Below, in pieces: positions 931 through 53,300 of a stretch of 64,000 bases of DNA. A model generated the notes under the pieces. It searched no databases and had not been told where the DNA came from. It saw only the letters and a list, made by a program, of their open reading frames with translations. The position numbers and the translations under genes are program-made. The number at the start of each line of letters is the position of its first letter. The stretch's first letter is position 1. This DNA is from Octopus bimaculoides (lineage: Eukaryota): contig NC_068989.1 of NCBI RefSeq assembly GCF_001194135.2, forward strand, positions 74,619,367 to 74,683,366, given 5' to 3'.

Positions 931-2811
931 ATGGTACACCACTTCCGGAATCTCTTCCAAGTTCTTTTGATTGCTTTTGCGAACGAAGTCATTAAACAGT
1001 CATATTGTTTGGTAGAAAATCTCGAATGTTATCCTTCAATTTGTGATGCTGAAAGTTTACAACGAAGATGTTCTTGTCATCAGTATTGTAATCTATATAA
1101 TGAATGTTGTTCAGATGTGATCAGCGAAACTATAATTGAACATGGAACATTGTCAACAGATTATAGCTGCAGAAAAATTAACGATAATAAATCAGACAGT
1201 TATTTTTTGTTTGACCGCTGTCCAAGCGACCATTCAGTAACAGAACACGTTACTTACTGTGAAACACCAGACGAGAATGACCGATTATACAACATACCTG
1301 CTTTAGGGAAAAAAACTAAAAGACTTTACAGGAATTTGTTCTGTGCTCTGTGTAACGGAGAGGAATACATATTATGGACAGTTCACTACAAATGCAATCA
1401 TCAAATGGATATTGATTTATCACTCTTCTCTCAAATGTTGAGAAATAATCATTGTAATGTATCGATTGAAGCTCCATCTAACTTTAGCGATTACCAATAT
1501 CCTTGTACAGATTATGTTTCAAGCTGTCCTATAAAACTTACCAATGCAACTTTAGTGTCTTCTTGTGTGTTTGAACCAATGTCTATGGTAAAATCAAATG
1601 GAACTAATTTCAGAAACACTCACTGCGCCATCTGTAATAGTGTTGATATTAATGATACTGAATGTAACATATCTGTCTCTGGAGAAAAGTCATATGAAAT
1701 AGAAATGTACACTTTCAAAGCAATATTTAATTACAATAACAACACTGTTGAAGTATTAAATGCATCTAATGAAAAAAACTATTTTAAAAAATTGCCCCCT
1801 TGTTCGCATGGATTTGTTTATGATGAACTAAAGAATGAATGCCGACAAGTTGAATTTAATTCCGTGTTAAATTGTACAACTAAAAGACTGAAGGAATCTG
1901 AATATCATTTTACTAGTGACGGGTTTCTTTATCTCAATTCTTCCCAGACGTGGCTAAACCAGTCAGAGTTCAGTCGAGATCCTCAAGGAATAAGTATCTG
2001 TGTAAATGATCATGAGACAGGATGGCAGTTTCTGGAGGTTTTTTTTATTCTTATGTATATCGGAATATTGTCCTCCGTTGTAGCAATATTCATAACTATT
2101 ACAGTCTATCTCTGTATACCAGAACTCCGTACATTACCAGGTAAACTAATCATGGGATTGTTGTTCTCCATGTTTGCAACCGAATTTGTTCTTTACATCA
2201 ACATTCATACTAAATTTCAATTACCATGCATTATAGTAATGCCTTTAATGCATTATTTCATACTAACATCTGTCCTCTGGATGAATGTCATATCATTTGA
2301 TGCGTTCTACACATTCTCAGGAATTATAAAATTTCCAGTTGCAGAAAAACAAGGGAAGAGGTTTATCTTCTATTCTTTATATGCTTGGATAACTCCACTT
2401 GTAATTGTGATAGCAGCACTGCTATTTTATCTTAAAATTCCGCATGAAAATTATTGTTTGTATCTTAATGACGTAATTTCGGCTTTTGCAATTCCAATAA
2501 CAGCAATTTTATTAATTAATACGTTGATGTTTTTCATTACCGCCATATGTCTCTATTTAGCTAGAAAAAGCACATCAAAATATCTTGGGCTACGTAAGAA
2601 AAGAGGATTTATGATTTATTTTAAACTAAGCCTTATTATGGGTATCACATGGGCTTTTTTGCCAATATTTGCCTATGCCAACATGGATGACGCAATCGTT
2701 ATATGCTTCACCTTAAATACTTATGTCGGGTTAATTATTTGTATTACATTTTTATCAACGAAAGCCGTTAGACGTTATTTGAAACAAGCATGCTGCAAAT
2801 GGTTTCACTAA
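931..2811 (+). CDS. Family-B (7tm_2, Methuselah-like) GPCR with SMB-like Cys-rich ectodomain, paralogue 1, 626 aa, single coding exon
   Basis: Uninterrupted ORF with an N-terminal hydrophobic signal, SMB-like CSCHQYCNLYNECCSD, and YRNLFCALCN and FRNTHCAICN motifs. Seven hydrophobic segments carry class-B motifs ELRTLPGK (ICL1), HYF..WMNVISFD (TM3), YSLYAW..P (TM4) and YFKLSLIMGITW (TM6). Confidence 0.92.
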   Translation: MVHHFRNLFQVLLIAFANEVIKQSYCLVENLECYPSICDAESLQRRCSCHQYCNLYNECCSDVISETIIEHGTLSTDYSCRKINDNKSDSYFLFDRCPSDHSVTEHVTYCETPDENDRLYNIPALGKKTKRLYRNLFCALCNGEEYILWTVHYKCNHQMDIDLSLFSQMLRNNHCNVSIEAPSNFSDYQYPCTDYVSSCPIKLTNATLVSSCVFEPMSMVKSNGTNFRNTHCAICNSVDINDTECNISVSGEKSYEIEMYTFKAIFNYNNNTVEVLNASNEKNYFKKLPPCSHGFVYDELKNECRQVEFNSVLNCTTKRLKESEYHFTSDGFLYLNSSQTWLNQSEFSRDPQGISICVNDHETGWQFLEVFFILMYIGILSSVVAIFITITVYLCIPELRTLPGKLIMGLLFSMFATEFVLYINIHTKFQLPCIIVMPLMHYFILTSVLWMNVISFDAFYTFSGIIKFPVAEKQGKRFIFYSLYAWITPLVIVIAALLFYLKIPHENYCLYLNDVISAFAIPITAILLINTLMFFITAICLYLARKSTSKYLGLRKKRGFMIYFKLSLIMGITWAFLPIFAYANMDDAIVICFTLNTYVGLIICITFLSTKAVRRYLKQACCKWFH

Positions 2812-3532
2812 ACAAAATTATAATTATGAAATGAATTTGATTTAATCATTTCACCCCATAAAAATCACAAGTATAGTCAAGTTTTTCCTACATCTAACGT
2901 ATCCGTTACTACAGGCTCAGAATACCATAAAAACCTCAAATTTCAAACGTTATAGTGTTATTATGTTATTTCTCCATTCAAAAAAATGCCCCCACCCTAC
3001 GAAACAATACACTCGAACTCAAACACCGCAAACATTATTCCTTAATCAATATATAGCCGAAAAATTTACGCCGCTTTCACCCTCAAGAGTGATGCCTAAC
3101 TAATAAAGTTGCATACGCAACAATCACAAGAACTGAAAACAGCATCAAAAATGAGGGTAAAGATTTAAATGGAAACACTATTAAATGGCCGCTTCATTCA
3201 ATGTTTCTACTTAGTACATCAACAGAGAAGGAATATCCAAAAGTAAACTGCAGTTGCCAGCTTCAGTGAGTTATTATTTTTTAGTTGCTTGAATCATTGG
3301 ATTGCGTCGCATGGGAAAGAGAAGGAAACGAGCGGCTGACCGGTCATCAACATCAAGTCTTATCACGGGTATAAAATTAACCGATAACAATGTACCTTTT
3401 GACGTACATATGTATTTACTTATATCATTTGTAAAAAAAAATACTATTTACATTCGAGACTGCGCATAAAAATCTTCGTGTAAAGATGGATTCAATCGCT
3501 GTCTTTTACAACTACACATGCGCATACATACA

Positions 3533-4844
3533 CAGAGGTTTAGCAGAGAAGACGGATGTTTTTGAAAAATTCACAAAATCATTAACTTTAGATGCAAACA
3601 AATTCTACTGACTTCATCGTGTTCATATTGAATTAGCATTTGTCAAAATCAATTGTGGAAGACAACATCCATCCTGTGTTGCCCGTCTTCACTAACGCAT
3701 TTCTGAAGACATACTTGGAAGTTGGCTTCCACTCTCTCCAGTATTGCTTTGTCGATTTGAGTTACTTCCCCACGAATAGCTTCCTTCAAACAGTCCTATG
3801 TACGGGGCTTACGCGCATACACACGTGCCTTGAGATTTCCCCACAATTCACACATGGGCAAATCAGGGTAACGAGGAGGCCAACGAATGTCAGAAAATCT
3901 GGAAATGAGACAGTCACCGAAGAGAGGGCGAAGAACGTCCATTGATGCTCTGGCTGTGTGGGCCGTCACCACATCCTGCTGAAACCTCACAGGTCGAATT
4001 GGCAAGGGTTTTCGTCGTGATTCAGACACAAAGAAGTTATCATATTGATGTAACGCTCGGAGGTCATGTAACAGCATTTCCATTATTGTCTTCTAAAAAG
4101 TAGGGACCAACGACGGCGGCTTTTCCAACAGTACGCCAAACCGTCACTTTTGGGATGTGCAGTGGTCTTTCGTGCAGTTATCTCAGATTTACAATAGCCC
4201 AATCTGTTGATTCAATATGACATTGAGATGAAAATGAGCTTAACCATTCGTTAACAAAATGAGGTTGTCATTTGCCTCAAAAATTGTTTCCATTTGATGT
4301 GCGAAGTTAAGCCGCTGTTCATAGTCTCATGATTTCAACTGTTGCCCAACGGCCAATCTATACGGGTGGAAAGGCAGGTCTTCAGGAAAAATACGCCTTA
4401 TCGATCGATTACCAATGCAAAGTTCAGTGGAATGCCTCCGAGCAGAGCGATTCGGATTCCGTATCAAAGCTTGTCTAACACGTTCCACATTTTCTGAAGT
4501 CCTTACCGTGCGTGGCACCCTCACCAGTTCCTATTCATTAGTGTACCTCATGTACGAAGTGCATTCACCCAACGTAAGATTGTGTTACGGGTGGGAACAA
4601 TCTGATTTCGGTGAATGCTGAAGCGACGCCGAAACCCACGCTGAAATGCTGAGACAGAGTCGTTATTCTTCTCGTCAATGCCGTTGGCAAACGCGATGCC
4701 TTATCGTCTACAGCGCCATGACTTCACCTGAAGAGAAAAAGAATGCTAAGGTACCACGGACCGAATGGTACCTGATTGACCACCTCTCCCATCCTAGAGC
4801 CGAGTAATAGCTATTTCAAAACGACCGACTCTTTGCCCACCCTG
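3533..4844 (-). mobile_element. Defective IS630-Tc1-mariner transposon, DD41D (rosa)-type
   Basis: Minus-strand remnants RTVRTSENVERVRQALIRNPNRSARRH and FQQD...WPPRYPDLPMCE, with 41 residues between the last two catalytic positions. Degenerate TIRs (CAGAGGTTTAGCAGAGAAGACGG vs revcomp CAGGGTGGGCAAAGAGTCGG); right end flanked by TA. Confidence 0.8.
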
Positions 4845-5010
4845 TACATAAATACATACACACACACTCACATACACATACGTACGTACATACATAAATA
4901 CATACATACATGCATACATACAAACATATGGACAAGAAATACAGAAATGAAATTGATTGATAACATACATACATACATACATACATACATACATACATAC
5001 ATACATACTT
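4845..5010. repeat. (TACA)n/(CA)n microsatellite
   Basis: Direct reading of tandem TACA and CA units. Confidence 0.95.
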
Positions 5011-5395
5011 ATGATAGCTAACGAGGTTGAGGGGTGATACGAAACAAGAATTTATACAGATCCCTCACCAAGGAGCATTGGTAAAATCTATTTATCAGAA
5101 ACTACACGCATTTGAAAATTGCAAGCCTTTCGACAGAATGTAATGACAGTTATTTTCATATGCAACTGGGAGTTGCCTTAAATTTTCTCTCAAAAAATCA
5201 ATTGGTTTTGACTTTTCAATAAACTTAGAGATAAATAAATCTGTTTATGTAATAATATTAAAAATAAATGGGCACGCAGAACATAACTTTCATACCTAAA
5301 TGTATGCCAGTGACGTATATAGATAGACGTATATGGATGGAATTTGTGCTGAGGTCTTGCGATTTGGTGGTGATTACATAATACAGCCCCTTCAT

Positions 5396-6975: not shown

Positions 6976-7014
6976 TATGTGTAGGTATATATGCATGAAT
7001 ATGTGAGTGAATGT

Positions 7015-7163: not shown

Positions 7164-9004
7164 CCAGGGTTTTCCGAGTATCTGCCCAGGGCTGTTAAAC
7201 GGAGAACTCTATTTTGCAAAACTATTTTTGGGCTTAAATAACCGCCCACCTATAATAAACGTCCATGGGCGTAAAATATGGAAGTAAAATATTTCACCTA
7301 GGAAAAACAAAGATATTCTCAAAAATCATATTTATTTTATACAGTTCCATTGAACTGCTATCGCTTCAGTTATCAGATATATAGATATAAAGAAACTGAA
7401 ACAGCCTTACAACAAGTAGCATTTTAAAAAATATTCTGAAGTTAACAATTGATCTATTAGGAAATATTGAAAATTAAACTATTGAAAACGTGAATAGAAG
7501 CCTCATATGAACAAATAAGGTGCATCTGGTGCATTTACCTGAAGGCCAGACAAAACATCCTTTAAGCGTGAGTTTAAGTTGAAGCAGAGTTAGTGTTCTT
7601 GCTTGCAGTCTGTTTAGATGTTCATTTGCTCTACGTCTGTAGATAAATTCAAAAGATTTTTTTATTCCCAATAATGGAGTAAAAAATATATATCAAAACG
7701 TGTTCAACGATCATATACCATTAGTTTCTTTATTTAAAGTGGCAACAGCTTGGGTCACAAAGTTCACTATCTCTTAATAAGAAGGTTTTTGTGCAATATC
7801 CTTTATTTGTATACTACTTTTTACCATTTGAATACCAATTCTCCCATTCATCACGAAGGCCAGTAATTGATACATCTAACGGCTGCAAGTAAGATGTTGC
7901 TTTATGAGTTTGAGAATTGTATTCCTACATTTGAACACTCCTAGGAGCTTTGTTTTCTTGTGCACTAAGTATTCATCCATGAATAGCACTGACTTCTGAG
8001 CATGGAATAGTTGTGCTGTTCTTTGCCCAAACACTTTGTCAGCCCACAGCGGCATGAGTTCATATGTGATTGATCCGCTGTTGGAGACTGTTAAGTAAAT
8101 ATCCTTTGGGACCTTGATTTTAGGCACGTTTTTCAATCCTTCAAGGATAATCATTGTTTTCAACACCTTTCCTGCAGCATTAACACGAAACACAGGAGTA
8201 AAACGAGCTTTGGTAGCACCATTGTGGCTAGCATCTACATTTTTATTGCCAACAAAGTCTATGGTTGTTGAACTCAACATGTCAACGTATGCAGGTTTTT
8301 CATCCATATTATAGATCTGATCAGTATTCTTATCTCTGTTAATACTGGAATCCTATCTAGATAGTCACTGGCGATTTGTGCCTTTTCTCCAAGTATTTAT
8401 TGTCTGCTTGAGCAAAATGTGTAATCTTTCTCACATTCAGTTTATTCTGTTTCTTGAAATTGAAAATCCATTTATCAGAACATCTAAAGCTGTTCGTTTC
8501 AATTCCAAACCTTTTTTCCAATTCAAAAGTATATTCCCGCAAACGGCGATAATTCACAATTATATTGTTTGCACGCTGGACAACAATCCACTATAAGAGT
8601 TCAATCTCTTGGTCCCTATGTGCTGATCCTCTACCTCCTCCAATTGATCTGCGCCTCCTCTTGTCTAACACATGGATTAACTCAATTCTTTTTGGGCACC
8701 ATTCTCTCAATCATTTTCTATCAATACCTATCGCTTGACGCAGCAGATAAATTCTTTCACTCGTTTAATAGCACTCAATTTTTCACTAATGGTATATAAT
8801 CGTTGAACACGTTTTGATATGTTTCCTCGACTACATTATTGGGAATTAAAAATCCTTTGAATTTATCTACATACGTAGAGCAAATGAACGTCTAAACAGA
8901 CTGCAAACAAGAACACTAACTCTGTTGTAACTCAAATAACGGGCCATCCAAATAAACGCCCATGGGTGATCTAACTGGATGGGCGGATTTTCGGAAATCC
9001 CCGG
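7164..9004 (-). mobile_element. Defective pogo/Tigger-family DNA transposon
   Basis: 25-bp TIRs (CCAGGGTTTTCCGAGTATCTGCCCA vs revcomp CCGGGGATTTCCGAAAATCCGCCCA) flanked by TA at both ends. CENP-B-like HTH remnant FRCSDKWIFNFKKQNKLNVRKIT, and DDE remnants NMDEKP, VLFMDEY and LQPLDV. Confidence 0.87.
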
Positions 9005-9077: not shown

Positions 9078-9516
9078 GCTTGTCATTAAAACAATATTTC
9101 AAATGCTGCAAGACTAGATTAATGTAACGGTGAGTTTTTTTGTTTTTTTTTTATGAGTTTGTATGAAACTTTACATATAAAAGTAGTATAAATATTTTGT
9201 ATTCCCAACTATGAAGCAAGCAATACCCTCAAGACTATCCCATTCAGCATTATGATATTATCACTTTTCATTCCATTTCCATACTTTCGCAATACGAAAT
9301 GCTTACATTTACTTCTACCTCACAAAGATTGTTTTTAAAATATGGAGACTTTGCTATTAATCCAGGAAATTTTCAAGAAATTTCACAATCAAATTGCATA
9401 AGATATATCTTTACGAACTTTCCTTAGCTTCAGTGTTGTGGTGTATTTCCTGCATTATCATATTACTTAGGTATTGTTAAACAAAATCTTAATGTATTCT
9501 TTCTTTCTTTTGACAG
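9078..9516 (+). promoter_or_regulatory. Putative 52-nt non-coding exon (9078-9129) plus 5'UTR intron (9130-9516) of GPCR gene 2
   Basis: Acceptor tatttctattccag ends at 9077. Strong donor ACG|GTGAGT at 9130. Acceptor ttctttctttcttttgacag ends at 9516 and is followed by AGACAACAGT. Confidence 0.55.
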
Positions 9517-9711
9517 AGACAACAGTAGCGACGTAATTCATTCAACGGATCATCCTCATATTATTTAGTAACACTTAATTATATGTTCATATTTGCTAAT
9601 AGAAATAAAGTCTGAATATACCATGCACTAAATCAAATTTTGGATGTTGCAAATGTAATGAGACATAAATACTTCTAAATTATAGCTGGCTCTATAAAAT
9701 ATATATTCAGC

Positions 9712-11619
9712 ATGAGACATCATTTCTGTAATCTCCTTCACATCCTGCTGATAGCTTTTGGAAACCAAGTTATTCAGCTTTCATATTGTTCGGTGAAAAA
9801 TATTGAATGTTATCCTTCGCTTTGTGATACAGAAAGTTTGCAAAGAAGATGTTCTTGTCATAAACATTGTTATCTATATAATGAATGTTGCTCAGACGTA
9901 ATTAATGAAACAATAAGTGACCTTGGAACATCCTTAATGGATTATAGTTGCAGGAAAATTAGTGATAATAAAATAGAAAGTTATTTTCTATTTGATCGCT
10001 GTCCAAGTGAACATTCAGTTACAGAACACGTTACCTATTGTGAAACACCGAATGAGAATGACCAATTATACAACATACCTGCTCTGGGAAAACGAACTAA
10101 AAGACTTTACAGGAATTTGTTCTGTGCTCTGTGCAACGAAGAAGAATACATATTATGGACAGTTCACTATAAATGTAATCATCAGATGGATATAGATTTA
10201 TCACACTTCCTTCACATATTGAGAAATAATCATTGTAATGTATCGATTGAAGCGCCACAGAACTTTCGCGAATATCAATATCCATGTACTGATTATATTT
10301 CAAGTTGTCCCACAAAATTTACCAATACATCTTTAGATTCTCCTTGTATGTTTGAACCAATGGCTATTGTGAGATCAAATGGGACTAGTTTTAGAAACAT
10401 TCATTGCGCTATTTGTAATGGTATTGGTATTAATAATATTGAGTGCAACGTAACGATCTCTTTAAACGTGTCACATGGAAAGAAGGAGTATAGCCTAATA
10501 GCAATATTTAACTATAATCATAACACAGTTGAACTATTAAACGCAAATAATGAAAAAGTATATTTGAAAGAATTGCCGTACTGTTCACCTGGATTTCTTT
10601 ACGACGAACTGAAGAATGAATGCCGACAAGTTGACTTTAGCTTCATCTTAAAGTGTACCCCCGAAAGATTAGACGATTCTGAGTATTCTTTCACTCTTGA
10701 TGGATATATCTATCTGAATTCTTCAAGAACGCTGCTAAACCAGTCAGAATTCATTCGAGATCCCCAAGGCATAAGTATTTGTGCAGATATTTATAACATA
10801 GACGCGCCTATGGATCTTAAAATATACCTTCTATTTTCGGGAATATTGTCCTCCAGTGTAGCTCTAATCATCACTGTTACGGTCTATTTCTCTATACCGA
10901 AACTCCGTACATTACCAGGTAAACTAACTATTGGACTTTTATCTTCAATGTTTGTAACACAGGTTGTTTATTTCATCGAAATTGTTATGCAACGCCGATT
11001 GGTGTGCAACGTATTCGACATATTCTTTCATTATTTCATGTTAGCGACTGCTTTTTGGATGAATGTTATATCATTTGACGCTTCATACAAATTTTCAGGA
11101 ATTATAAAGTTTCCAATTGCAGAAAAACAAGGGAAGAGATTTATCTTGTACTCCTTATATGCTTGGATGTCTCCACTTATATTTGTGATTGCAACATTGA
11201 TATATTTGCAGATTATTTCTCCTAAAGATCCGGACGAATATTTTTGTTGGTATGATAGGAATGGACTTCTAACGTGGTTTGTTGGAGTTCCGCTGATAAC
11301 AATTTTATCTATGAATATGTTGATTTTCAGCGTCACAGTCGTAGGTCTCTGTTTAGCTAGGAAAAACTCATCAAATCATCTTGGGGTACGTAAGGATGTA
11401 GGAATTATGATTTATTTTAAATTAAGCCTTATAATGGGTTTAACATGGTATTTTATGCCTTTATTTGCCTTCGCCGAAATCTACGACGTTTACGATGTTA
11501 GCATAATTGTAAATGCTTTTATCGGTTTAATAATTAGTATTACACTCCTGTCAACGAAAGTCGTAAGACGCCATTTCAAACAATCATGCTCCAAATGTTG
11601 GTACAAAATGCATTGCTAA
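9712..11619 (+). CDS. Family-B (Methuselah-like) GPCR with SMB-like ectodomain, paralogue 2, 635 aa, single coding exon
   Basis: Uninterrupted ORF collinear with paralogue 1, with the same ectodomain Cys pattern and 7TM motifs (KLRTLPGK, HYF..FWMNVISFD, YSLYAW, CWY in ECL2, YFKLSLIMGLTW). Confidence 0.92.
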   Translation: MRHHFCNLLHILLIAFGNQVIQLSYCSVKNIECYPSLCDTESLQRRCSCHKHCYLYNECCSDVINETISDLGTSLMDYSCRKISDNKIESYFLFDRCPSEHSVTEHVTYCETPNENDQLYNIPALGKRTKRLYRNLFCALCNEEEYILWTVHYKCNHQMDIDLSHFLHILRNNHCNVSIEAPQNFREYQYPCTDYISSCPTKFTNTSLDSPCMFEPMAIVRSNGTSFRNIHCAICNGIGINNIECNVTISLNVSHGKKEYSLIAIFNYNHNTVELLNANNEKVYLKELPYCSPGFLYDELKNECRQVDFSFILKCTPERLDDSEYSFTLDGYIYLNSSRTLLNQSEFIRDPQGISICADIYNIDAPMDLKIYLLFSGILSSSVALIITVTVYFSIPKLRTLPGKLTIGLLSSMFVTQVVYFIEIVMQRRLVCNVFDIFFHYFMLATAFWMNVISFDASYKFSGIIKFPIAEKQGKRFILYSLYAWMSPLIFVIATLIYLQIISPKDPDEYFCWYDRNGLLTWFVGVPLITILSMNMLIFSVTVVGLCLARKNSSNHLGVRKDVGIMIYFKLSLIMGLTWYFMPLFAFAEIYDVYDVSIIVNAFIGLIISITLLSTKVVRRHFKQSCSKCWYKMHC

Positions 11620-12602: not shown

Positions 12603-13152
12603 NNNNNNNNNNNNNNNNNNNNNNNNNNNNNNNNNNNNNNNNNNNNNNNNNNNNNNNNNNNNNNNNNNNNNNNNNNNNNNNNNNNNNNNNNNNNNNNNNN
12701 NNNNNNNNNNNNNNNNNNNNNNNNNNNNNNNNNNNNNNNNNNNNNNNNNNNNNNNNNNNNNNNNNNNNNNNNNNNNNNNNNNNNNNNNNNNNNNNNNNNN
12801 NNNNNNNNNNNNNNNNNNNNNNNNNNNNNNNNNNNNNNNNNNNNTATATAAATTTATTTATTTATTTATTTATTTATATTCATATATATACATATATATT
12901 ATTTGTATTTTGTAATATCTTTTAATGTATTTGATGTACCTAATTTGTTTTTCCGCATTATTACTTCTATACCCGCTCAACTTGATCCCTCTTACAGCCA
13001 TTCTTTACCTTGTGGAATGATCCCTTGTAAAAACATCGGAATCTAAGTTTTAATCATTTCAACACTAATAACTGTCTTTCATATGTGAATATGTGGATCT
13101 GGTCTATGAACTATATAGATATAATATAATATAGTATAATATCATATATAAT

Positions 13153-23309: not shown

Positions 23310-24400
23310 TCCCCATAAACCATCTTTTTATGTTTATTCTAAGTTGTAAAGTTTATGTATTTTATTAATTGCCATTTTTATGTTTCAGGTACTATATGTG
23401 ATTGTTTAATCATTCCACGAACAAAAGAAGCCTTGGAATTGTCTGAATTTCACAGCGGCCGTACTGTAGATCATTCTGAAGGTGGATATACTCAGCGTAA
23501 ACTCGCAGAAAATCTTGGGATCCCGATTTCTACAGTTAATTGAGTGATTCTGCAATTCACCAGAGAGTGGAAGGAGTCCACATCACCTCGCCTGGACCCC
23601 TCTCTTTGTTAAGAGAAGTGTGGAGGATAATCCTCGTGTGAGGCCTCTGACATAGTAGAACAAATTAATGTCATTCCCAGAAAAGCTGTCATGTATCTTC
23701 ACAAACTTGGTTACTATGGCAGAGCACAGGCCACTTCTTCGACCATCCAACATCATGGGCTAGTGAGATAATGGAGAGGCCATTAACGTTTTGGGCCACT
23801 GCTATATCCTCTCATGAGTCCAGATTTGCTGCATTTCCTGTCAGTGGTCGAGTGTGGGTCTGGAGATATTGTGATTAAGAATTTGATATGAAAAGATTGC
23901 AGCCAACAATGAAACACGGCAGTTATTTTGTGATTGTCTGGGGTGCATTTTGGAGCAATGTCTGATCAAAGTTGGTTCAGTGTGAGGGAATTGTAATCAC
24001 AGATGAATATGTGTCCACATTGCTGAAAGGACTCCTTCCAATCTTCTCCATTGGGGAAATGATTAAAGAAGACTCTTTATTTATGAAATACGGGGCTCCT
24101 TGTCACACGGCTAAAATGACCCAAGATTTATTGGATGAGAATAGCATTAAAAAGCTTCCATGGCCAAGCCAGTCACCCGATATGAAGCCGACTGAACACC
24201 TCTGGGACATAATGGACAGGACACTTTATAAAATGAACAAGAAAGCATCTTCAAAGCCAGATCTTTTGAGATTACTGCATGAAACTTGGTAAGAAATTCC
24301 ACAAGAGAATTTTCGTCATCTGGTCAGTAACATGCCTAATAGGCTCCTTGCATTGAAACATGCAAAGGGAATGTCTACCAGATATTAAATATTCTCCTTA
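23310..24400 (+). mobile_element. Defective Tc1 (DD34E) transposon
   Basis: HTH remnant ELSEFHSGRTVDHSEGGYTQRKLAENLGIPISTV. Catalytic remnant FMKYGAPCHTAK...WPSQSPDMKPTEHLW with 34-residue spacing and D mutated to Y. Boundaries approximate. Confidence 0.85.
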
Positions 24401-28188: not shown

Positions 28189-28368
28189 TCTTTTCTACTC
28201 TAGGCACAAGGCCCGAAATATTTGTGGAGGGGGCCAGTCAATTAGATCGACCCCAGTACGCAACTAGTACTTAATTTATCGACCCCGAAAGGATGAGAGG
28301 CAAAGTCGATCTCGTCGGGATTTGAACTCAGAACGTAAAGGCAAAGGAAATACCGCTATGCATTTCGC
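28189..28368 (-). mobile_element. tRNA-derived SINE (head truncated)
   Basis: Contains ATCGACCCCAGT...TACTTAATTTATCGACCCCGAAAGGATGAGAGGCAAAGTCGA, the revcomp of the central domain of the SINE at 32621. Confidence 0.78.
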
Positions 28369-29289: not shown

Positions 29290-32084
29290 ATGTGATGCGC
29301 TGCAGGGCTCTTTCTGTGTGCGCGACAAGTGCGGCATCATTAGCAAAGAAGAAGTTCTGGATCAGTTGCTCTTGAGCCTTGGTGTGGGCCTGCAGGCGCC
29401 GGATTTTGAAAAGACTATCATCCAAACTGCCTGATGGAGACGCCGTCTTCAGCGTCGAGGTCTGCAGTAGCCTGCTTGAGCATCATGCTGAAGAAGATGT
29501 TGAAGAGAGTTGGTGCCAGGATACAGCCCTGATTCACGCCGTAATTGATGAGGAATGGCTCTGAAATGTCACTAGTCAGGCGGACTTGTCTTTGTTGGTC
29601 TTTGTGAAGTTGGGCGATCATTGTTAGGAATTTTATGGGACAGCCAAGTCGGTTTAGGATCTGCCACAGACTTTTCCTGCTCACTATGTCCAACGTTTTC
29701 GTCAGATCGGCAAGTTTTACATAAAGTGGTTTATTTTGCTCCCGACACTTTTCTTGGAGCTGTCTGAGAACGAAAACCATATCTGTTGTGCTCCTGTTGG
29801 CTCTGAAACCACATTGGCTTTCTGGAAGATGGTTTTCGACAATGGACAGAGAAAATTTGTTGAGGAGTAATCTTACTAGAACTTTTCCTGCAGTGGAAAG
29901 TATGGTGGTCCCCTAGTAGTTTGAGCAGTCTGACTTTTCCCCTTTGTTTTTGTACAGTTTAAGGATGACACCATCAGGGAGATCTTGTGGCAGCTTATCC
30001 TATTCCTTGCACGCAACGAGGAGCTCGTGAAGGTTAGCATGACAAGACCCCCATGCTTCCATATCTCATCAACTCCCGCTGCCTTTCTACTCTTCAGCTG
30101 GCCTATGGCAACTTTGGTCTCTTCCAGGATTGGAGGCTCATCTAGCTTCACTCTGACAAGTTGTTGTTGGATGTGGAGGATTTGCGTTTTCCTGGACAAC
30201 TCGCTTCGCACCGAAGAGGGCCTGAAAGTATTCAGACCAGCGGTTGAGGATGGATGCTGTGTCTGTGAAAAGGGCCTGGCCATCTGAGCTGCGCAAGGGA
30301 CTCTGGACTTGATGTGTTGGGCCGTAAACTGCCTTTGGAGCTTCATAGATCGCTCTGTAGTCGTCAGAGTCAGCGCACAGTTGGGTTCACCGTGAGATGT
30401 TGGTCCACCACTCATTCTGAACTTTACGGAGTTTGCGCTACAGAAAGTTAAAGGCAGGACAGTTGTGCCAGATGTGCTTGGTGGGCAGATCTCTTCTTCT
30501 TTAATAATTCCTGGATCGGTACATCGTTTTCGTCAAATCAATCTTTGTTTTTTTTTATTCGTAAAGCCTAGGATTTCTGCAGGTCTGTAGGATGCCAGTT
30601 TTCAGTTGTTCCTATAGGATTTCTGGAAAGTGATCTGAGGGGCAATTGGATTCATCAAGCTTTGATTGTAGTCTTGCCTGGAAGTTTACTTTCACTTTAT
30701 TTAGCTGCACCCCGCTAGTTTTGATCTTCTTGTTGTTAGCCGGTCCTGTCTTTTTTGTTGGTTTGGGCTTGAAGTGAGGATATTGGTGATGACAAGCTGA
30801 TGTTCGGTGTGAAACTCAAGCAAGAGTCGCCCGTTGTCGTTGCAATTCCCAAACTCATGCTTTCCGAGGACTCCTTTCCAGGTATCTGAATCTTCGCCCA
30901 CTCTGAAGTTGAAATCTCCTAGGATTATGACCTTATCGTCGGTGAGAATTCCCTGGAGGAGTCTGCACAGGTTTGAGTAGAACTTGTCCTTGTCTGTTGG
31001 GTCTGCTTGGAGGGTCAGAGTGTAAACGCTGAAGATCATGGCATGCTGCTTGTTTTTCAGAGGGAGGTGCATGGAGATAATGCCGTCAGAATGACCTCCT
31101 GGTAGACTTTCCAGCTTTGAGGTAATGACACCGACACCTGAACGGCATCTTTCTGATGGGGGGGGGGCCTACCTGACCAATATAGGGTGTATCCGGCAGT
31201 ATGTTCTTTCAAGCTGCCTTCCTTTGGGAGCCGGACTTCGCTAAGGGCTGCGATATCAATATCTAGTCTGGACAGTTCATGTACAATGAGAGCAGATCGG
31301 CGTTCTGGGCGCCCTGTGTCGCCTGAGTCAAGAATAGTCCCGACGTTCCGACATGAGATCCTATCCTCAGACCCTTGGCAACATTTCAAGGGTGTGTAGA
31401 GTCTTTCCTTTTTGTAATTGTGCGTATTCGACCGCTTGAAGAAGATGCCCGTTGGCAGTGGTTTCCTAACTGGTGGTGTAGGAGACGAGCCTTCTTTAGG
31501 CCATCTTTTCTAGGCCCCTCTCCATGTGGAGCAAGCAGTGCTCTTCCTAGATAAGGCTGCTTGGTCGTTAGGGATGCTGCCTAGTTATGTTGTCGCCTGC
31601 GTGTCAGCACCAGGCGACCAATGTCCTGAACCGCTTGCATGCAGGCTATGAGCTACGGCTTCCACTAACATCTTTCGTCCCCTTCCCATCGTTACAGGGC
31701 TTGGGGAGTTGTGATTGTGGTTGTGGACGCAGACAGGTCCTTCGACCTGCGCGATGGAGTTTTAAGTGAAGTGCAGTCTGCGCAGAACTTGCCCTGCCCT
31801 TTCATCTGCCGAGGCTCAGTAAGCTGGGGCGATGACAGAGAGATTCTCATGTCGTAGGTTTTATATCGCAGTGTCCTTCTCCTTGATAGGGTGCCGATCA
31901 TGGATAACAAGCCCCATCCCCTTGGAGCGGCCTGATTATACTGCGCCAGACACCCGCAGTCGTCCCCTCCTGTTGGTTTAGATCCAGGTGGTACCACGAG
32001 GAGGTCGAAGTAGGACATAGGGTTTGCGTCACTCTTTGGAAGTTTTAGCTCAGTATAATGCTCTCTCAAGCAGCATCCGGTGAT
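29290..32084 (-). mobile_element. RTE/BovB-like LINE: 5'UTR, AP endonuclease and N-terminal RT; 3' half missing
   Basis: NVGTILDSGDTGRPERRSALIVHELSRLDIDIAALSEVRL and IILGDFNFRVG (endonuclease). MVFVLRQLQEKCREQNKPLY, GVNQGCILAPTLFNIFFSMML and FFANDAALVAHTE (RT, FADD-equivalent). Confidence 0.9.
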
Positions 32085-32142: not shown

Positions 32143-32146
<4 letters not shown>

Positions 32147-34213
32147 GTAACCATTCAGTTACAGAACATGTTACTTACTACAAACATCAGACGAGAATGA
32201 CTAATTATGCAGCATACCTTCTTTGGGAAATCAATCTAACAGATGATGATGAATTAGACAACTATTTTCTATTTGACCGCTGTCCTAGCGACCATTCAAT
32301 TAAAAAACACGTCACTTACTGTGAAACACCGGACGAGAATGACCGATTATACAACATACCCGCTTTGGGAAAACGAACTAAAAGACTTTACAGGAATTTG
32401 TTCTGTGCTCNNNNNNNNNNGAACTAAAAGACTTTACAGGAATTTGTTCTGTGCTCTTTGTAACGGAGAGGAATACATATTATGGACAGTTCACTACAAA
32501 TGTAATCATAAAATGGATATTGATTTATCACTCTTCCTTCACATGTTGAAAAATAATCACTTTAATAAATCCACTAGAGCGCCATTGAACTTTAAAGGTT
32601 GTCAATATCCATATACAGATGAGGGCAGCTGGCAGAATCGTTAGCATGCTGGTTGAAATGCTTAGCGGTATTTCGTCTGCCGTTACGTTCTGAGTCCACC
32701 GAGGTCGACTTTTCCTTTCATCCTTTCGGGGTCGATTAAATAAGTACCAGTTACGCACTGGGGTCGATGTAATCGACTTGATCCCTTTGTCTGTCCTTGT
32801 TTGTCCCCTCTATGTTTAGCCCCTTGTGGGCAATAAAAAAATAGATATCCATATACAGATTATGTTTCAAATTGTCCCTGAAAAGTTACCAATACATCTT
32901 TAGTTTCTTCTTGTATGTTTGAGCAATGGCTAATCTGAGATCAAATGGAACTAATTTTAATAACATTCACTTCGCCATCTGTAATGGTACTGACATTAAT
33001 AATATTGACTGCAACGAAATGATCTCCATAGAAAAGTCATATAGAAAGGTGTATAGCGTAATAGTAATATTTAATTATAATCATAACACAGTAGAAATAT
33101 TAAATGCAAATTACGAAAAAGAATATTTGAACGAATTGTCATCTTGTTCACATGAATTTCTTTACGATGAACCGAAGAATAACTGTCGACAAGTAGACTT
33201 TAGCTTCATCTTAAATTGTACAACTAAAAGCCCAAAAGAAATCCAATATCATTTCACTAATTTTAGATTTCTCTATTTAAATTCTCCTCACACGAAGCAT
33301 AACGAATCAGAATTCATTCGAGATCCTCGAGGCCTAAGTATCTGTGTAAATAATGTTAATGGTAAGACAGTAATTTTTGATATTGTGGCGAACTATATTA
33401 AATTAGTGGGGCTTGCAGACTCTGTTACAGTCTATACCAGAACTTCTTACATTACCAGGTAAATTACTTATAAGACTTTTATCAGCACGTTGTATGGCAT
33501 GTTTCTTATCCCACTGCAAATTACATCGACTTTTCTGTGTAAATCATTAGCTTGTCTGAAGCATTATTTTCCCCTTATGTTTTTCTTTTGGATGAGCGTC
33601 ATAGCATTTAATGCCTACTATACAATCCCAGGTCTTACACCACTTCAAGGTACAGAAAAACATAGAAAGCGACTTATCTATTACTTTTTGTATACTTCTA
33701 TCCGTCCACAAATAATCGTGACAGTGTCACTTCTATTTCAATAAGTCTGGGAATCATGAGCTTTCTCCAGGTTATGGAAAAGGATATTCTTGTTGGATTA
33801 AAAATATAAATATACGATTGTGGTTCATTGTAGTCCGAATAATAATAATTTTAATGCTTAATTTCTTGCCTTTCATTCTTACCACAAGAAATCTCTGTTT
33901 ACTGAGTGAACACTCATCAAAACATCTTGCAGAACATAAAAGTGCGAACTTTAAGGTTTAGATTAAATTAAGTTTTTTAATGGGCTCAAGATAGACATTT
34001 ACATTTACTCCGTTGCGTGAAATATATGTAATACATTTTACAACGAGTACATAAATCGCTATATCGGTTTAATAATCAATATATCACTTTTATCAACAAA
34101 ACTTGTTACACAGAATTTTCACCTTAAAATCTATGAAAGCTATTCCAAATAAAATTTGAAAGAGTTTCATATTTCACCAAAATTTGAGAAAACATATTCA
34201 ACAAATGTACATG
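32143..34213 (+). pseudogene. Pseudogene of the same family-B GPCR family (paralogue 3)
   Basis: Collinear homology from DHSVTEHVTY to the C-terminal TNVH. Lacks the signal peptide and SMB region. Has a SINE insertion, an in-frame TGA near 32880, frameshifts and a TM1 deletion. Confidence 0.9.
32621..32844 (+). mobile_element. tRNA-derived SINE with 16-bp target-site duplication
   Basis: TSD ATATCCATATACAGAT at 32605-32620 and 32845-32860. tRNA-like head, central GTCGACTTTTCCTTTCATCCTTTCGGGGTCGATTAAATAAGTACCAG domain and A-rich tail. Confidence 0.9.
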
Positions 34214-44629: not shown

Positions 44630-44664
<35 letters not shown>

Positions 44665-45695: not shown

Positions 45696-45863
45696 AGCAC
45701 TTAGATATAAAATGACTCAAGTAGCGCTTAGATATAAAATGACTCAAGTAGCACTTAGATATAAAATGACTCAAGTAGCACTTAGATATAAAATGACTCA
45801 AGTAGCGCATAGATATAAAATGACTCAAGTAGCGCATAGATATAAAATGACTCAAGTAGCGCT
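45696..45863. repeat. 27-bp minisatellite, 6 copies plus 6 bp (AGCACTTAGATATAAAATGACTCAAGT)
   Basis: Direct reading; units vary only at two positions (CAC/CGC and TTA/ATA). Confidence 0.97.
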
Positions 45864-47359: not shown

Positions 47360-47404
<45 letters not shown>

Positions 47405-48794: not shown

Positions 48795-49985
48795 ACCATT
48801 TTGACACAACGATCTCCATTTTGTTCGCTCCGAGGCTGTTCGCATAAAATTGTTGTGAGCTATCATCACTGCTGAGAGATTACTCTTCAGTTTGTCCCTA
48901 TATCTGAGCCATGGTCGACCAACATTCCGCTATCTGGCTGGCTATACATGTGGACTTTGGGTATTTTTTCGTCATTCATTCTGATGACATGGCCAGCCCA
49001 GTGCAATTGCGACTGCATAAGGAAACTCTCGACTCCACCAATCTTATACTTGCTGAACAGGTCGGCATTCGAAACTCTGTCATTTAGTGAATAACCGCAG
49101 ACTGAAACAGCCCTTGTGGAAGATGTCGAGTTGGCTAATGTGTCATCAATAGGGTATCCACGATTCTGAACCATACAAGAGAATAGTAAAAATGGCAGCT
49201 TTATAGACCTGTATTTTGGTGTCAAGTTTAATCCCCCTTTCATTCCATAGGCGATGACGGAATTTTCCAAATGCGCTGGTTGCCTTTGCAACACGGTTGG
49301 TGATTTTATCATCAACGGAAGCACTCGAATTTACTTTACTACCAAGATATGCAGTTCACATAATTTAGCTTTTTCCCATCAACCTGTATAGGAATGTCAG
49401 GGAAATTGTGAACCAGTCTTATGATCAAATTCCAACGTTAGTGTCATAATACGATCAGAAATACCTTTGGGTAGAAGAAGAAGGAATCTGACTATTTCTG
49501 TCTTGATGGCAAAACCAACACCAGAGCAGCGAAGCTCGTCCTCATTTCTTCCACACCTGGAAAATTACGTATTCAACTTCCAATTATGATGATCCTGTCC
49601 TGCAAAACGAGTTTTACCGAGTGCAGCTATGTCAATATTGCATTCCTTTAGTTCAAGGGCAACCAGTGCTATTTTTCGTTCTGGTGCTGGGTGACTGTCG
49701 TATTCCAATAACCAAGGTTAATATCCTTAGATTTCCTCATGTTTCGACTGCGTTACTGAATAAGCAGACAGCTGCAGGGAGTTGTCATGTTTAAGGTGAG
49801 TACGCAATGTTTAGGGTTCCTTTTATCACCCCCTCTCTCTGTTAGGAAAAGTTGTGCTGTGTCTACATAGAGCTACTCTGTTACCACTGGAGGAAACGGA
49901 CAGCGAAGTTACTCACAAGTTCTGTGCTGGAATGGCCATAACCCAATGGTCACCAACTGCGTAGAGATCTAACAAGAGTCTTCCA
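48795..49985 (-). mobile_element. RTE-clade LINE, internally deleted (endonuclease start joined to RT C-terminus)
   Basis: SQLHWAGHVIRMNDEKIPK (RTE C-terminus) and the endonuclease remnant ALVALELKECNIDIAAL..SGVGFAIKTEI on the minus strand. Confidence 0.8.
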
Positions 49986-50635
49986 GTATTCTCCTTTACC
50001 TCTTTACCTCTCCCTGCTGCTTTCACTCACTCGCCAGAGGCCTTTTTGTTTTTGCAAGTTGGGACTGCGCAGTACTGAATGAATAAAACCCACACATGAT
50101 TTGATTTTACCGTTGAAATCTTGTGTAGAAAGAGCCACATATTCTGGAAGTGATGATAGCAGGTATATGGTGCATATATGTGTCACAATACCAAGAACAA
50201 CACATCTCAGGTTTTTTTCTTCAGATATTTCTATCTCCTAAACAAAGTACTATAAACAAGCTGGAGAACCTGGTCTACCATATCAGTCAGAATTTACTGA
50301 TAGAATTTGCTGATAGGTCAGACGAAGAATTGTGAAGGTGCCAGATTGGGGGTCAGGTCGAAGGTCTAGAAAGTATTTCAGTGTAGGTAGTCCTTCGTTG
50401 TCTGGGATCACTGCATATAAAGTTTTGATATCAAGAGTGGAAAGAAATTTAGAGGAGCCAGAAGGGAAGGAGAATGAGTTAAAGAGACGAAGAGCATGGT
50501 TTATGCTGTGGATGTGGGATGGAAGCTGCTAGGGGGCAAGAACATAGTCGAGGTATATAAACTCAATAAACTATTAAAGATAGAGAAGAGATGTCAGAAG
50601 TTCTAAAAAATTTTAATCCATGCATAAAGTAAATA

Positions 50636-50706
<71 letters not shown>

Positions 50707-51195
50707 ACATGTTTACATATTGAGTTATATTTGTTTAATGCTACTGCCAATACAGTTGTCATTATGTATGGTATTAGAATATCAATAGCCAACCAAACTA
50801 AATGCAGCTAAATGCCATTTCAAATTTAGTATTTGTCTTTAATGCTCTGAGCTCTTTATTAATGAAAATGTTATATAAGCATTTAATATCTTAATTTGTA
50901 GAGCAAGAGATAGACACATGATAATCCCATGTCATTTTAATCTTATGGTCTCCATTTTGCATATACGTTACTGTTACCTTTACAAAACTTATGGAATTCG
51001 ATAATTTCCAATTACCAATTACATGACATTTTTCTGACTTACCTTTCTTACCTTTGCAAAGGTCATATTAGAAACAAAAAAGCAATATTTTTGAGAATGA
51101 TTATTTGAAGCTGCTTTGGGTTAGGATATTGTATTATCAATATTAATATACTGGTTATGTTCTGCATCATGGTATTTTCTAAATATTATCTTAAT

Positions 51196-51216
51196 ATATA
51201 CCTTCTTTATTTTCAG
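51196..51216 (+). promoter_or_regulatory. Splice acceptor of the 5'UTR intron of GPCR paralogue 4
   Basis: ccttctttattttcag|ATATACAACAGTT, homologous to the acceptors at 765 and 9516. Matching donor not confidently located. Confidence 0.6.
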
Positions 51217-51335
51217 ATATACAACAGTTGATTGCTTCAAGGGAAAAACTGTCTACCTATTTAAGAAACAATATTTTATTATCGAAAATATAAAAACACT
51301 AACTCAAGGACAAAGTTCTCACACCGGAATTCAAA

Positions 51336-53300
51336 ATGTTCCAGTACTCCAAGAATCTACTAATCATTTTTCTGATAGCTCTTGGCGACGAAGTTATTCA
51401 ACAGTCAAGTTGTTTTACAAACAATCCCGAATGTAATCCAACAATGTGTATCAGTTGTTCGTGTAACAATTATTGTTACCTGTATAATGAATGTTGCTCA
51501 CATTCGGTAAATCAAACTATTATAAACCAAAGAACATTGTCAACAGATTACAGTTGCAGGAAAATTGATGCTAACAGTTATTTCATGTTTGACCGCTGTC
51601 CAAGCGACCATTCATTTACAGAACACATTACCTACTGTGAAGCACCAGATGAGAATGATCAATTATACAACATACCTGCTTTTGGAAAACAAACTAAAAG
51701 ACTTTACAGGAATTTGTTCTGTGCTCTGTGTAACGGAGAGGAATACATATTATGGACAGTTCACTACAAATGTAATCAGGTGATGGATATAGATTTCTCT
51801 CTCTTCCCTGACAGACAGATACAGAATCACTGTCAAGTATTGTTTGAAGCGCCATCAGACTATACAGATTACAAATACCAATGTATTCATTACGTTGCAA
51901 AATGTCCTCCAAACGTTACCAATACTTCTTTAGTTTCTTCGTGTATGTTTGGGCCAATGGCTATTGTGGAATCAAATGGAACTACTTTTAGGAACACTCA
52001 CTGCGCCATCTGCAACGGTATTCATATTAACGATATTCTCTGTAATGCATCTATCTATGGAAATATTTCATATGGAACGCCCAGACAACAATATCCTCTA
52101 ACAATAATATTTAACTATAATAATAATAATTTTGAAGTTTCAAATAATGGGCAACATAAACTTTATTCGAAAAAGCTACCCTCTTGTTCACAAGGATTTA
52201 TTTACGATGAAAAAATGAAACAATGTCGGCAAGTTTACTATAATTCTATATTAAATTGTACAGCTAAAAGACTGGAAAAATCTGAATATTACATCACCAG
52301 TGATGGGTATCTTTATCTAAATGCTTCCCACATTCTGCTCAACCAATCAGCATTCATTCAAGATCCACAAGGCATAAGTATTTGTGTAAATAACAGAACA
52401 GAGGTGATGGGAAAATATTATACTTTTGCAAGCTATATCACATTAGTAGGATTAGTGACTTCTATTCCTGCTCTATTCATCACTATCATAGTTTATTTTT
52501 GTATACCTGATCTCCTTACATTACCAGGTAAACTTCTCATTAGTCTTTTAGTATCATTGTTTACAGCAGAACTCCTGCTACTTATCTCACCACAAGTTAC
52601 ATCAAGTTCCTTGTGTTCAACAATAGCTATTATGATGCATTATTTTTTCCTGGCGGCTTTCTTCTGGATGAATGTCATGTCATTTGATGCCTGGTACACT
52701 TTTTCAGGATTTACACCGCTTCGAAGTACAGAAAAAGATACAAAGAGACTTGTCTACTATTCTTTATATGCTTGGATATGTCCCCTTATAATTGTGACAG
52801 TGTCACTCATATTTCAATATGCACCCGGGAACCATGGACTTTCTCCAGAATATGGAAAAGGATTTTTTTGTTGGATTACAAATATAAAATCTCGATTGTG
52901 GCTCTTTGCAGCGCCCGTAATAATAATTTTGTTACTTAATATATGTTCTTTCATACTCACTGCCAGAGGTCTCTATTTAGCAAGTAAAAACTCCTCTAAA
53001 TATCTGGAAGTAAAGAATAAGACGAAATTTAAGGTTTATTTTAAGCTAAGCCTTTTAATGGGCTTAACATGGATATTTAGCTTCTTTCCAAAATTGAATG
53101 AAATCGGTGTAGTTTTTCTTATATCCTGTATTTTAAATTCCTTTACTGGGTTAATAATTAGCATATTCTTTTTGTCAACGAAAATTGTAAGACGTCATTT
53201 TCGTCTTAAATGCTACCAAAGATATTACAAAAAGGAATGCAAACATACTGACATATCTATCAGTTCTAACAAAACGCAGTTGACTAATGTACATATATAG
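51336..53300 (+). CDS. Family-B (Methuselah-like) GPCR with SMB-like ectodomain, paralogue 4, 654 aa, single coding exon
   Basis: Uninterrupted ORF with the same architecture and the most canonical class-B 7TM (HYFFLAAFFWMNVMSFD, PEYGKGFFCW, YFKLSLLMGLTW). Confidence 0.93.
   Translation: MFQYSKNLLIIFLIALGDEVIQQSSCFTNNPECNPTMCISCSCNNYCYLYNECCSHSVNQTIINQRTLSTDYSCRKIDANSYFMFDRCPSDHSFTEHITYCEAPDENDQLYNIPAFGKQTKRLYRNLFCALCNGEEYILWTVHYKCNQVMDIDFSLFPDRQIQNHCQVLFEAPSDYTDYKYQCIHYVAKCPPNVTNTSLVSSCMFGPMAIVESNGTTFRNTHCAICNGIHINDILCNASIYGNISYGTPRQQYPLTIIFNYNNNNFEVSNNGQHKLYSKKLPSCSQGFIYDEKMKQCRQVYYNSILNCTAKRLEKSEYYITSDGYLYLNASHILLNQSAFIQDPQGISICVNNRTEVMGKYYTFASYITLVGLVTSIPALFITIIVYFCIPDLLTLPGKLLISLLVSLFTAELLLLISPQVTSSSLCSTIAIMMHYFFLAAFFWMNVMSFDAWYTFSGFTPLRSTEKDTKRLVYYSLYAWICPLIIVTVSLIFQYAPGNHGLSPEYGKGFFCWITNIKSRLWLFAAPVIIILLLNICSFILTARGLYLASKNSSKYLEVKNKTKFKVYFKLSLLMGLTWIFSFFPKLNEIGVVFLISCILNSFTGLIISIFFLSTKIVRRHFRLKCYQRYYKKECKHTDISISSNKTQLTNVHI

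Follow-up and report, generated by a model that had tools for sequence, protein, structure and literature searches.

Three intact genes and one pseudogene for family-B G protein-coupled receptors (GPCRs) lie on one strand of a 64-kb stretch of chromosome CM046609.1 of Octopus bimaculoides (about 74.619-74.683 Mb, placed via the annotated gene G4). This stretch, called the window here, has 36% G+C and 11 runs of N. We consider it very probable that the window represents the left margin of the known Methuselah-like (Mth-like) class B cluster of this species, published as group 4, and that the cluster owes its form to an inherited coding sequence (CDS) in one exon, tandem DNA duplication and purifying selection. 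The main value of this result is corrective. The array is real, yet it is part of an expansion that was published in 2019, and its chemoreceptor-like layout would be an inherited trait of a very large and almost unstudied invertebrate family that joins the domains DUF8401 and 7tm_2 (more than 2300 clusters at 50% identity). The novel findings are modest and comprise two unannotated members, an apparently ancient origin of the one-exon layout, a characterised pseudogene, a derived seven-transmembrane region (7TM) in two of the genes, G1 and G2, and an ectodomain without a known fold.

Each intact gene consists of a single open reading frame (ORF) on the plus strand, i.e. G1 at 931..2811 (626 amino acids, aa), G2 at 9712..11619 (635 aa) and G4 at 51336..53300 (654 aa). 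The ORFs start with a signal-peptide-like methionine and stop past helix 8, and an in-frame stop is located 36-45 nucleotides (nt) 5' of every ATG. G1 and G2 share the architecture of a signal peptide, a DUF8401-type cysteine-rich ectodomain and a 7tm_2 domain, and G4 joins DUF8401 and 7tm_2 as well. The Pfam 7tm_2 scores of 55.7 bits for G1 (5.4e-15), 64.3 bits for G2 (1.3e-17) and 99.1 bits for G4 (3.1e-28) were above the gathering cut-off of 20.6; the pairwise identity of the three proteins was 53-65%. A tblastn search with these proteins detected exactly one further copy in the window, ψG3, which was fragmented over changing frames. Thus ORFs, 7tm_2 matches and tblastn bore out an original prediction for this DNA in so far as it had described family-B GPCRs on one strand, three of them intact with the CDS in one exon and one a pseudogene. 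None of the 11 N-runs was inside or adjoining an intact ORF, the closest one being at 12603, about 1 kb past the G2 stop.

G4 is annotated in GCA_001194135.2 (CM046609.1, 74,670,702-74,672,666); no UniProtKB entry was found for G4 or for P0003, an intact paralogue beyond the window. G1 and G2 are unannotated. The exact sequence of G1 had no match in the gene and protein collections searched, no protein more than 62% identical to G2 was present among 5.8 billion clusters, and G1, G2 and the intact G2 orthologue of Octopus sinensis were missing from all protein sets searched. For G1 and G2 of O. bimaculoides and G2 of O. sinensis it seems that the annotations of both species have overlooked a gene. 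About 850 bp past the G4 stop we observed a 74-bp tandem duplication (54138-54295; 2.1 copies, 94% identity), which overlaps candidate poly(A) signals at 54196 and 54270.

The receptors belong to class B by their 7tm_2 scores and by the cysteine pair of transmembrane helix 3 (TM3) and extracellular loop 2 (ECL2). In an alignment of 25 sequences the TM3 cysteine, C427, was invariant and the ECL2 cysteine, C512, was nearly invariant (at least 90%). The AlphaFold2 model of G4 showed seven transmembrane helices and helix 8. When the 7TM was compared with the PDB by phmmer, ADGRL2, ADGRD1, ADGRG2 and ADGRL3 were found with E values of about 1e-18 and CRF1R with 5e-5, and the top 14 Foldseek matches of the G4 7TM were all adhesion GPCR 7TMs with a TM-score to the target of 0.75-0.88. 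Judged by sequence and model, the 7TM appears to be of the adhesion type and much nearer to adhesion GPCRs than to secretin-type receptors. Yet, while adhesion GPCRs (ADGRL/latrophilin, ADGRD1, ADGRG2) have the closest solved 7TM by sequence and fold, the octopus receptors lack GAIN/GPS and the HL/T cleavage motif, and a tethered agonist is not recognisable. Pfam gave no GPS/GAIN match with the full proteins at E<=0.1 or with the ectodomains at E<=10, no HRM match (PF02793) in full proteins or ectodomains, and no Methuselah_N match (PF06652) at E<=10. The absence of Methuselah_N does not exclude membership in the Mth/Mthl family because this ectodomain is arthropod-derived and all non-arthropod members are without it (de Mendoza et al. 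2016, PMC4768249). Membership of the family is decided by the 7TM clade, and the family is ancient in metazoans, with repeated expansions and losses (PMC4768249). Like Drosophila Mth and Mthl1-15, the octopus receptors combine a class B 7TM without GAIN/GPS with a cysteine-rich ectodomain and form tandem, lineage-specific expansions. On the other hand, the fly ectodomain is PF06652 with 10 cysteines and 5 disulfides, whereas that of the octopus is DUF8401 with about 24 cysteines.

This ectodomain (Pfam DUF8401, PF28443) comprises about 340 aa with about 24 conserved cysteines and is joined directly to TM1. The assignment of DUF8401 was made from precomputed Pfam matches for G4 and all full-length paralogues, and by alignment only for G1 and G2. 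Its conservation extends over octopus, Lingula and arthropods, and 25 cysteine columns do not vary from octopus to Lingula. A profile search with the ectodomain returned 3830 clusters (50% identity) at E<=1e-3 and 2321 at E<=1e-10, most of them with proteins of 650-850 aa. Foldseek of an ectodomain-only AlphaFold2 model with a predicted local distance difference test score (pLDDT) of 64 found no match in the PDB below E = 1, the best being 1.4, and no GAIN structure was matched; with no match to a solved fold, a structure of this ectodomain would be new. An N-terminal CxC..C..CC motif of G1, G2 and the Lingula protein gave only sub-threshold Somatomedin_B matches (E 0.014-0.1), a likeness that we take as a hint and not as a finding. 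P0217, a distant family member on a contig of the European Nucleotide Archive (ENA), has recorded matches to Somatomedin_B, DUF8401 and 7tm_2, in agreement with this weak N-terminal motif. A literature search for DUF8401 found nothing. A further homologue, P0032 (757 aa, about 30% identical to G4), has 588 near-identical members in Logan assemblies of sequencing runs; its source organism is therefore heavily sequenced.

The cluster spans at least 300 kb, with the window at its left edge. On the same chromosome, paralogues are located at 74.694 Mb (P0003, plus strand), 74.808 Mb (P0007, plus strand), 74.874 Mb (P0011, minus strand) and 74.923 Mb (P0021, minus strand), which is 10.5, 125, 190 and 240 kb beyond the end of the window. 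The CDS of each of these four is one ORF, and an additional family fragment adjoins P0011. A0A0L8H7T3/LOC106872517, GFU5, GFJ7, GFJ1 and GFC2 are same-chromosome or same-family paralogues, one of which was placed on the chromosome via its cluster mate. NCBI names the paralogues 'Mth2' or 'Mth-like'. Table S2 of Ritschard et al. 2019 (PMC6408891) assigns the same five to class B 'group 4' and gives tau values of 0.81-0.98 and a bulk-tissue expression dominated by axial nerve cord, sucker and skin. In that study group 4 is an octopus-specific Methuselah-like expansion that comprises 45 sequences of two octopus species and is reported to be nearest to Mthl15; it originated by tandem duplication, is co-localised in tandem and has divergent tissue-specific expression (PMC6408891). 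Selection on it was uniformly purifying, with a ratio of nonsynonymous to synonymous substitution rates (dN/dS, ω) of 0.306 and negative site and branch tests (PMC6408891).

In a neighbour-joining tree the octopus copies formed one clade, mostly of 1:1 species pairs, apart from Lingula, arthropod and other homologues. G1, G2, G4 and P0003 made up one sub-clade; ψG3 was left out of the tree and is nearest to P0003 by DNA identity. The octopus clade and the published group 4 (PMC6408891) agree with the lineage-specific tandem expansion that had been predicted, but this expansion, together with the arm-tissue expression of the paralogues, was already published in 2019. Our data and the published group 4 are alike in species, 7tm_2 family, tandem arrangement, tissue-specific expression and purifying selection. 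In contrast, the one-exon CDS, the occurrence in Lingula, the pseudogene, DUF8401 and the reversed constraint of G1 and G2 (see below) are absent from the text of that paper. We also tried to match the genes of the window to the 2015 scaffolds of Table S2 (Scaffold31252 and Scaffold69694). This was given up because spacing and gene length did not fit, and so the published expression values are not linked gene by gene to the window.

All eight intact octopus paralogues examined (8/8) were single ORFs, and no intron-bearing parent was seen among the copies examined. The brachiopod Lingula anatina has the same layout. Its homologue P0034 (744 aa, 2235 bp) is exactly one ORF; two further DUF8401-7tm_2 genes accompany it on its strand, all within 12 kb (contig L002, 1-12235; LFEI02000008.1). 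Another one-ORF homologue was found on a marine ENA contig. The only intron-bearing relative seen was a barnacle homologue, P0041, with at least 8 coding exons across 31 kb. A word-indexed search with the Lingula protein gave 7 matches, none of them from a named mollusc. The same-strand array of one-ORF genes in Lingula suggests that the intron-free CDS and the tandem habit were inherited from the mollusc-brachiopod ancestor or an older one and are not an octopus novelty. If the one-exon layout was ever founded by retroposition, this event would be ancient. As to the Lingula trio itself, it adjoins a gene of the ERM family (FERM domain). Its middle gene is modelled at only 468 aa, although tblastn aligns residues 40-737 over two frames; either this copy is frameshifted or its gene model is wrong.

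The mode of duplication was deduced from the DNA upstream of the genes. A pyrimidine tract and a CAG, followed by a conserved block (ATACAACAGT..ATTCAnTCAAnGGA), are present 115-195 nt 5' of the ATG in G1, G2, G4 and P0003. In G1 the candidate 3' splice site of an intron in the 5' untranslated region (5'UTR) is located at 720..800 on the plus strand with the CAG at about 763-765 and a block that begins ATACAACAGT; an in-frame stop at 886 lies between this candidate acceptor and the ATG. The corresponding plus-strand candidates are at 9475..9550 in G2 (TTCTTTCTTTCTTTTGACAG, then AGACAACAGT; kept in O. sinensis) and at 51180..51255 in G4 (CCTTCTTTATTTTCAG, then ATATACAACAGT). With the exception of this acceptor-like block, DNA similarity of the paralogues is confined to the CDS (-9 to about +75 nt) and the surrounding flanks are unalignable. 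A comparison of O. bimaculoides with O. sinensis had no power to delimit the UTR exon, since an identity of 84-92% extended over all 900 bp upstream. Thus, from the conserved 5'UTR acceptor of the original prediction, the pyrimidine tract, CAG and block stand in four paralogues, and a splice site is what this pattern would fit. Each gene would then probably consist of at least one non-coding 5' exon spliced to a single large exon with the whole CDS.

Because the acceptor-like block is shared, the octopus paralogues appear to have arisen by DNA duplication and not by repeated retroposition. An intron-bearing parent in the lineage and the loss of all introns, those of the UTR included, would mark a retrocopy, and this combination was not found among the copies examined. 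A retrocopy as founder in the octopus lineage, as had been proposed, is contradicted both by the one-ORF array of Lingula and by the shared block. The prediction had also named equally intron-free and ubiquitously expressed orthologues as grounds for its own rejection. The first half of this applies, since relatives in the outgroup are equally intron-free; the second does not, the published expression of the paralogues being not ubiquitous.

Next to origin we considered tempo. G1, G2, G4 and P0003 are each paired with a gene of O. sinensis or O. vulgaris, P0003 clustering at >=90% identity with an O. sinensis protein. The O. sinensis orthologue of G2 (contig L008, 14346-16253) is intact with 635 aa and 81% identical. 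That of G1 (L008, 9786-11674; 83% aa identity) has one 1-nt deletion and frameshift at about 9917, i.e. at about codon 45, and that of G4 (contig L010; 78-91% aa identity by segment) has two 1-nt deletions at about 9872 and 11060; stops are absent from both. The frameshifts of the G1 and G4 orthologues could be those of real recent pseudogenes or long-read indel errors. Order and strand are conserved between the species, and the spacing of G2 and G4 is 42.3 kb versus 41.6 kb. NCBI models the G1 and G4 orthologues of O. sinensis as truncated proteins of 561 and 365 aa. In addition, an isolated fragment with 82% identity to G1 codons 49-93 lies 6.6 kb 5' of the O. sinensis G1 (L008, 3077-3211) and is either a relic of another copy or a duplicated exon piece.

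Substitution rates were estimated pairwise by the Nei-Gojobori method (NG86). The dS was 0.15-0.17 between orthologues and 0.5-0.8 between paralogues of the sub-clade; ω was 0.49-0.55 between orthologues and 0.23-0.43 between paralogues, i.e. below 1 in every comparison. For the ectodomain the pairwise ω ranged from 0.18 to 0.58, and neither these values nor the published tests indicated diversifying selection on the ligand-binding part. Pseudogenes interspersed among intact copies, as expected of a birth-and-death repertoire, are represented by ψG3, while few orthologues and rapid gain and loss were not observed, since we found 1:1 pairs and conserved synteny. The array is stable under moderate constraint with a slow turnover and is not a fast birth-and-death family.

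These data bear on the model of the original prediction, in which a retrocopy in the octopus lineage founded a fast birth-and-death, ligand-diversifying repertoire similar to chemoreceptors or immune sensors. It would account for an intron-free CDS in same-strand tandem copies of which one in four is dead, for TE-rich spacers (TE, transposable element) and for the arm bias that has been published for the expression of paralogues (sucker, skin and axial nerve cord). An orthologue ω of about 0.5 exceeds that of typical housekeeping genes, and in G4 the ectodomain is the faster-evolving half (ω 0.58 versus 0.36 in the 7TM). Yet the intron-free tandem layout is common to Lingula, the shared acceptor-like block points to copying as DNA, and the single-ORF state of all eight intact octopus paralogues examined came with no intron-bearing parent. 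Moreover, the orthologues of the two Octopus species are syntenic 1:1 pairs with their spacing kept, the ectodomains of G1 and G2 are more constrained than their 7TM, the published test found no positive selection (PMC6408891), and the family is small, with 45 group-4 sequences in two octopus species (PMC6408891). We therefore regard this model as improbable. In particular, behaviour like a chemosensory repertoire is at odds with syntenic orthologues of 78-91% aa identity, conserved spacing, ω<1 and the published ω of 0.306. The likeness to intron-free chemoreceptors (vertebrate olfactory and trace amine-associated receptors; class A candidates of molluscs) lies in one coding exon behind 5'UTR introns, which are putative in the octopus genes, and in tandem arrangement, pseudogenes and TE-rich spacers. 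In contrast to those families, the octopus family is small and stable with congeneric 1:1 orthologues and ω<1, it belongs to another GPCR class, and the ligand-facing domain of G1 and G2 is not the faster half.

This last point was seen when ω was calculated by domain. For G1 an overall ω of 0.49 was composed of 0.25 in the ectodomain and 0.81 in the 7TM, for G2 an overall ω of 0.55 of 0.43 and 0.68, respectively; in G4 the relation was reversed with 0.58 in the ectodomain and 0.36 in the 7TM. Correspondingly, the DNA identity of G1 and G2 to G4 and P0003 was 77-85% in the ectodomains and only about 61% in the 7TM. The 7tm_2 scores of G1 and G2 are about half of that of G4, which has the best-conserved 7TM among the three. 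Out of 78 family-conserved columns G1 keeps 66 and G2 69, and all 12 and 9 departures are within the 7TM; G1 has a deletion in ECL2 as well. On the other hand, both retain 15/15 invariant family columns, among them the TM3 cysteine C427, as well as the ECL2 cysteine C512. Thus the 7TM of G1 and G2 is clearly shifted and derived. A slower ectodomain and departures from family-conserved positions that are all in the 7TM do not sustain the claim of ligand diversification, and the pattern of G1 and G2 is the opposite of what receptor diversification predicts.

The same data could be read as a decay of G1 and G2 toward pseudogenes, with G4 as the sole working receptor of the window. No source has an annotation for either gene, their 7tm_2 scores reach about half that of G4, ω of the 7TM is 0.81 and 0.68, the 12 and 9 altered positions among the 78 family-conserved ones all fall into the 7TM, which in G1 carries the ECL2 deletion, and the O. 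sinensis orthologue of G1 has the 1-nt frameshift at about codon 45. However, the ORFs of 626 and 635 codons are intact, O. sinensis G2 is intact despite a dS of about 0.17, and the lone frameshift of O. sinensis G1 may be a long-read indel error. Furthermore, with ω of 0.25-0.43 the ectodomains have not lost a single family-conserved position, and the 15 invariant columns as well as C427 and C512 are kept in both proteins. Decay is hence unlikely in our view: intact ORFs in both species and constrained ectodomains argue that G1 and G2 are genes and not dead ORFs.

Several points weigh against our view of the window as the edge of group 4 with an inherited layout. G1, G2, G4 and P0003 may be outside the 2019 dataset, and their membership in group 4 is suggested by 40-63% identity to listed members, a shared cluster and the neighbour-joining tree. 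The 5'UTR intron of G1, G2 and G4 is deduced from a sequence pattern that it fits. G1 and G2 may be weakly or not expressed, given their absence from every protein set. Finally, the ectodomain is without a known fold, a provisional statement as the confidence of its model was moderate (pLDDT 64).

Taken together, we favor the following scheme for the group-4 edge. The intron-free CDS and the tandem habit would have come from a lophotrochozoan ancestor, and the octopus copies would have been multiplied by tandem DNA duplication before the split of O. bimaculoides and O. sinensis. Moderate purifying selection would since have maintained them as syntenic 1:1 orthologues, ψG3 having presumably died long ago. 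The predicted protein starts with a signal peptide, followed by a disulfide-rich ectodomain of about 340 aa, a 7TM of the adhesion type that lacks GAIN/GPS, and then helix 8 and a short tail. Such proteins may act as cell-surface receptors in which the ectodomain binds an extracellular ligand or partner and signals via the 7TM to a G protein. Going by the published paralogue data, they may act above all in tissues of the arm (axial nerve cord, sucker, skin), with expression domains divided among the duplicates. In the G1/G2 lineage the combination of a fast-diverging 7TM with a constrained ectodomain points to altered signalling or coupling rather than to new ligands. The reversal of constraint thus leads to a concrete, testable hypothesis, that of changed coupling and not of a changed ligand. 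A bolder extension would make the DUF8401 Mth-like receptors a GPCR-based system of peripheral sensing in the octopus arm (sucker, skin, axial nerve cord) beside the nicotinic-type chemotactile receptors, with G1 and G2 keeping the ectodomain and having the 7TM re-tuned to another output, e.g. another G protein, or a role in adhesion or as a decoy; we hold this to be a long shot.

The fourth copy of the window, ψG3 (32146..34212, plus strand), is a 5'-truncated pseudogene of the same subfamily. About 150 nt of its 5' coding sequence are missing with a microsatellite in their place. Its ectodomain is interrupted by an insertion at 32621..32844 (224 bp, no strand assigned) with an A-rich end, which resembles a short interspersed nuclear element (SINE) and is flanked by a 16-bp target-site duplication, ATATCCATATACAGAT, at 32605-32620 and 32845-32860. 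Away from a 10-N gap within the pseudogene, the frame is shifted by at least 6 indels and interrupted by several in-frame stops; ψG3 is a true pseudogene regardless of this gap. Its closest intact relative is P0003 at 74.5% nt identity, and ψG3 thus appears to be an old member of the sub-clade rather than a recent duplicate. In the segment 32146-32300 the peptide HSVTEHVTYYKHQTRMTNYAAYLLWE resembles a degenerate duplicate of the following HSIKKHVTYCETPDENDRLYNIPALGK, as if about 100 nt had been duplicated in tandem within the pseudogene.

The gap in ψG3 is a 10-N scaffold join (32411-32420; no strand assigned) within a flanking duplicate at 32375-32456. The 36 bp to its left (32375-32410) are an exact copy of the 36 bp to its right (32421-32456), both flanks overlap on G1 nt 384-418, and deletion of 46 nt restores a single frame. 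From the exact duplicate and the shared G1 segment we concluded that the join is an unmerged contig overlap and not a biological lesion; the change of frame at this site is meaningless. Similar duplications may be concealed at other small gaps of the chromosome assembly. Since the 64 kb contain 11 N gaps, one of which (32411-32420) proved to be an unmerged overlap, it might be asked whether the paralogues themselves are an artefact of uncollapsed haplotypes or of scaffolds misjoined near gaps. However, the copies are merely 70-77% identical in DNA, far under allelic similarity, and the independent O. sinensis assembly shows the same order, strand and spacing. An assembly artefact is therefore extremely improbable, and the reading as haplotigs or assembly duplications was rejected on the grounds of low DNA identity and synteny in O. 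sinensis.

The spacers had been described as consisting almost only of TEs. TE relics were indeed found: a degraded long interspersed nuclear element (LINE) on the minus strand just 5' of ψG3 (29421..31168; RVT_1 2.1e-14, Exo_endo_phos_2 3.6e-5), a pogo/Tc5-type relic on the minus strand in the G1-G2 spacer (7879..8590; DDE_1 1.5e-4, HTH_Tnp_Tc5 2.9e-4, both just under the gathering scores) and a Tc1/mariner transposase fragment on the plus strand in the G2-ψG3 spacer (23966..24289; DDE_3 6.1e-5, under the gathering score). A SINE-like repeat of 140-180 bp was present in 3 copies with 77-81% identity (28192-28368, 32626-32786 and 54630-54832), one of which is the insertion that disrupts ψG3. 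Yet Pfam scans of 20 spacer ORFs gave TE-domain matches in only 6, and most of the spacer was unclassifiable by the methods used; the description is thus supported in part, by the LINE, Tc1/mariner, pogo/Tc5 and SINE-like relics. No further host gene was detected in the window, and a tRNA scan of the window found none. The spacers also contain many microsatellites and assembly gaps. Two tandem repeats were recorded besides, a 27-bp minisatellite at 45696-45863 (6.2 copies, 96% identity, unit AGCGCTTAGATATAAAATGACTCAAGT) with an open frame on both strands, and a G-rich 23-bp repeat at 56757-56956 (8.7 copies, 80% identity).

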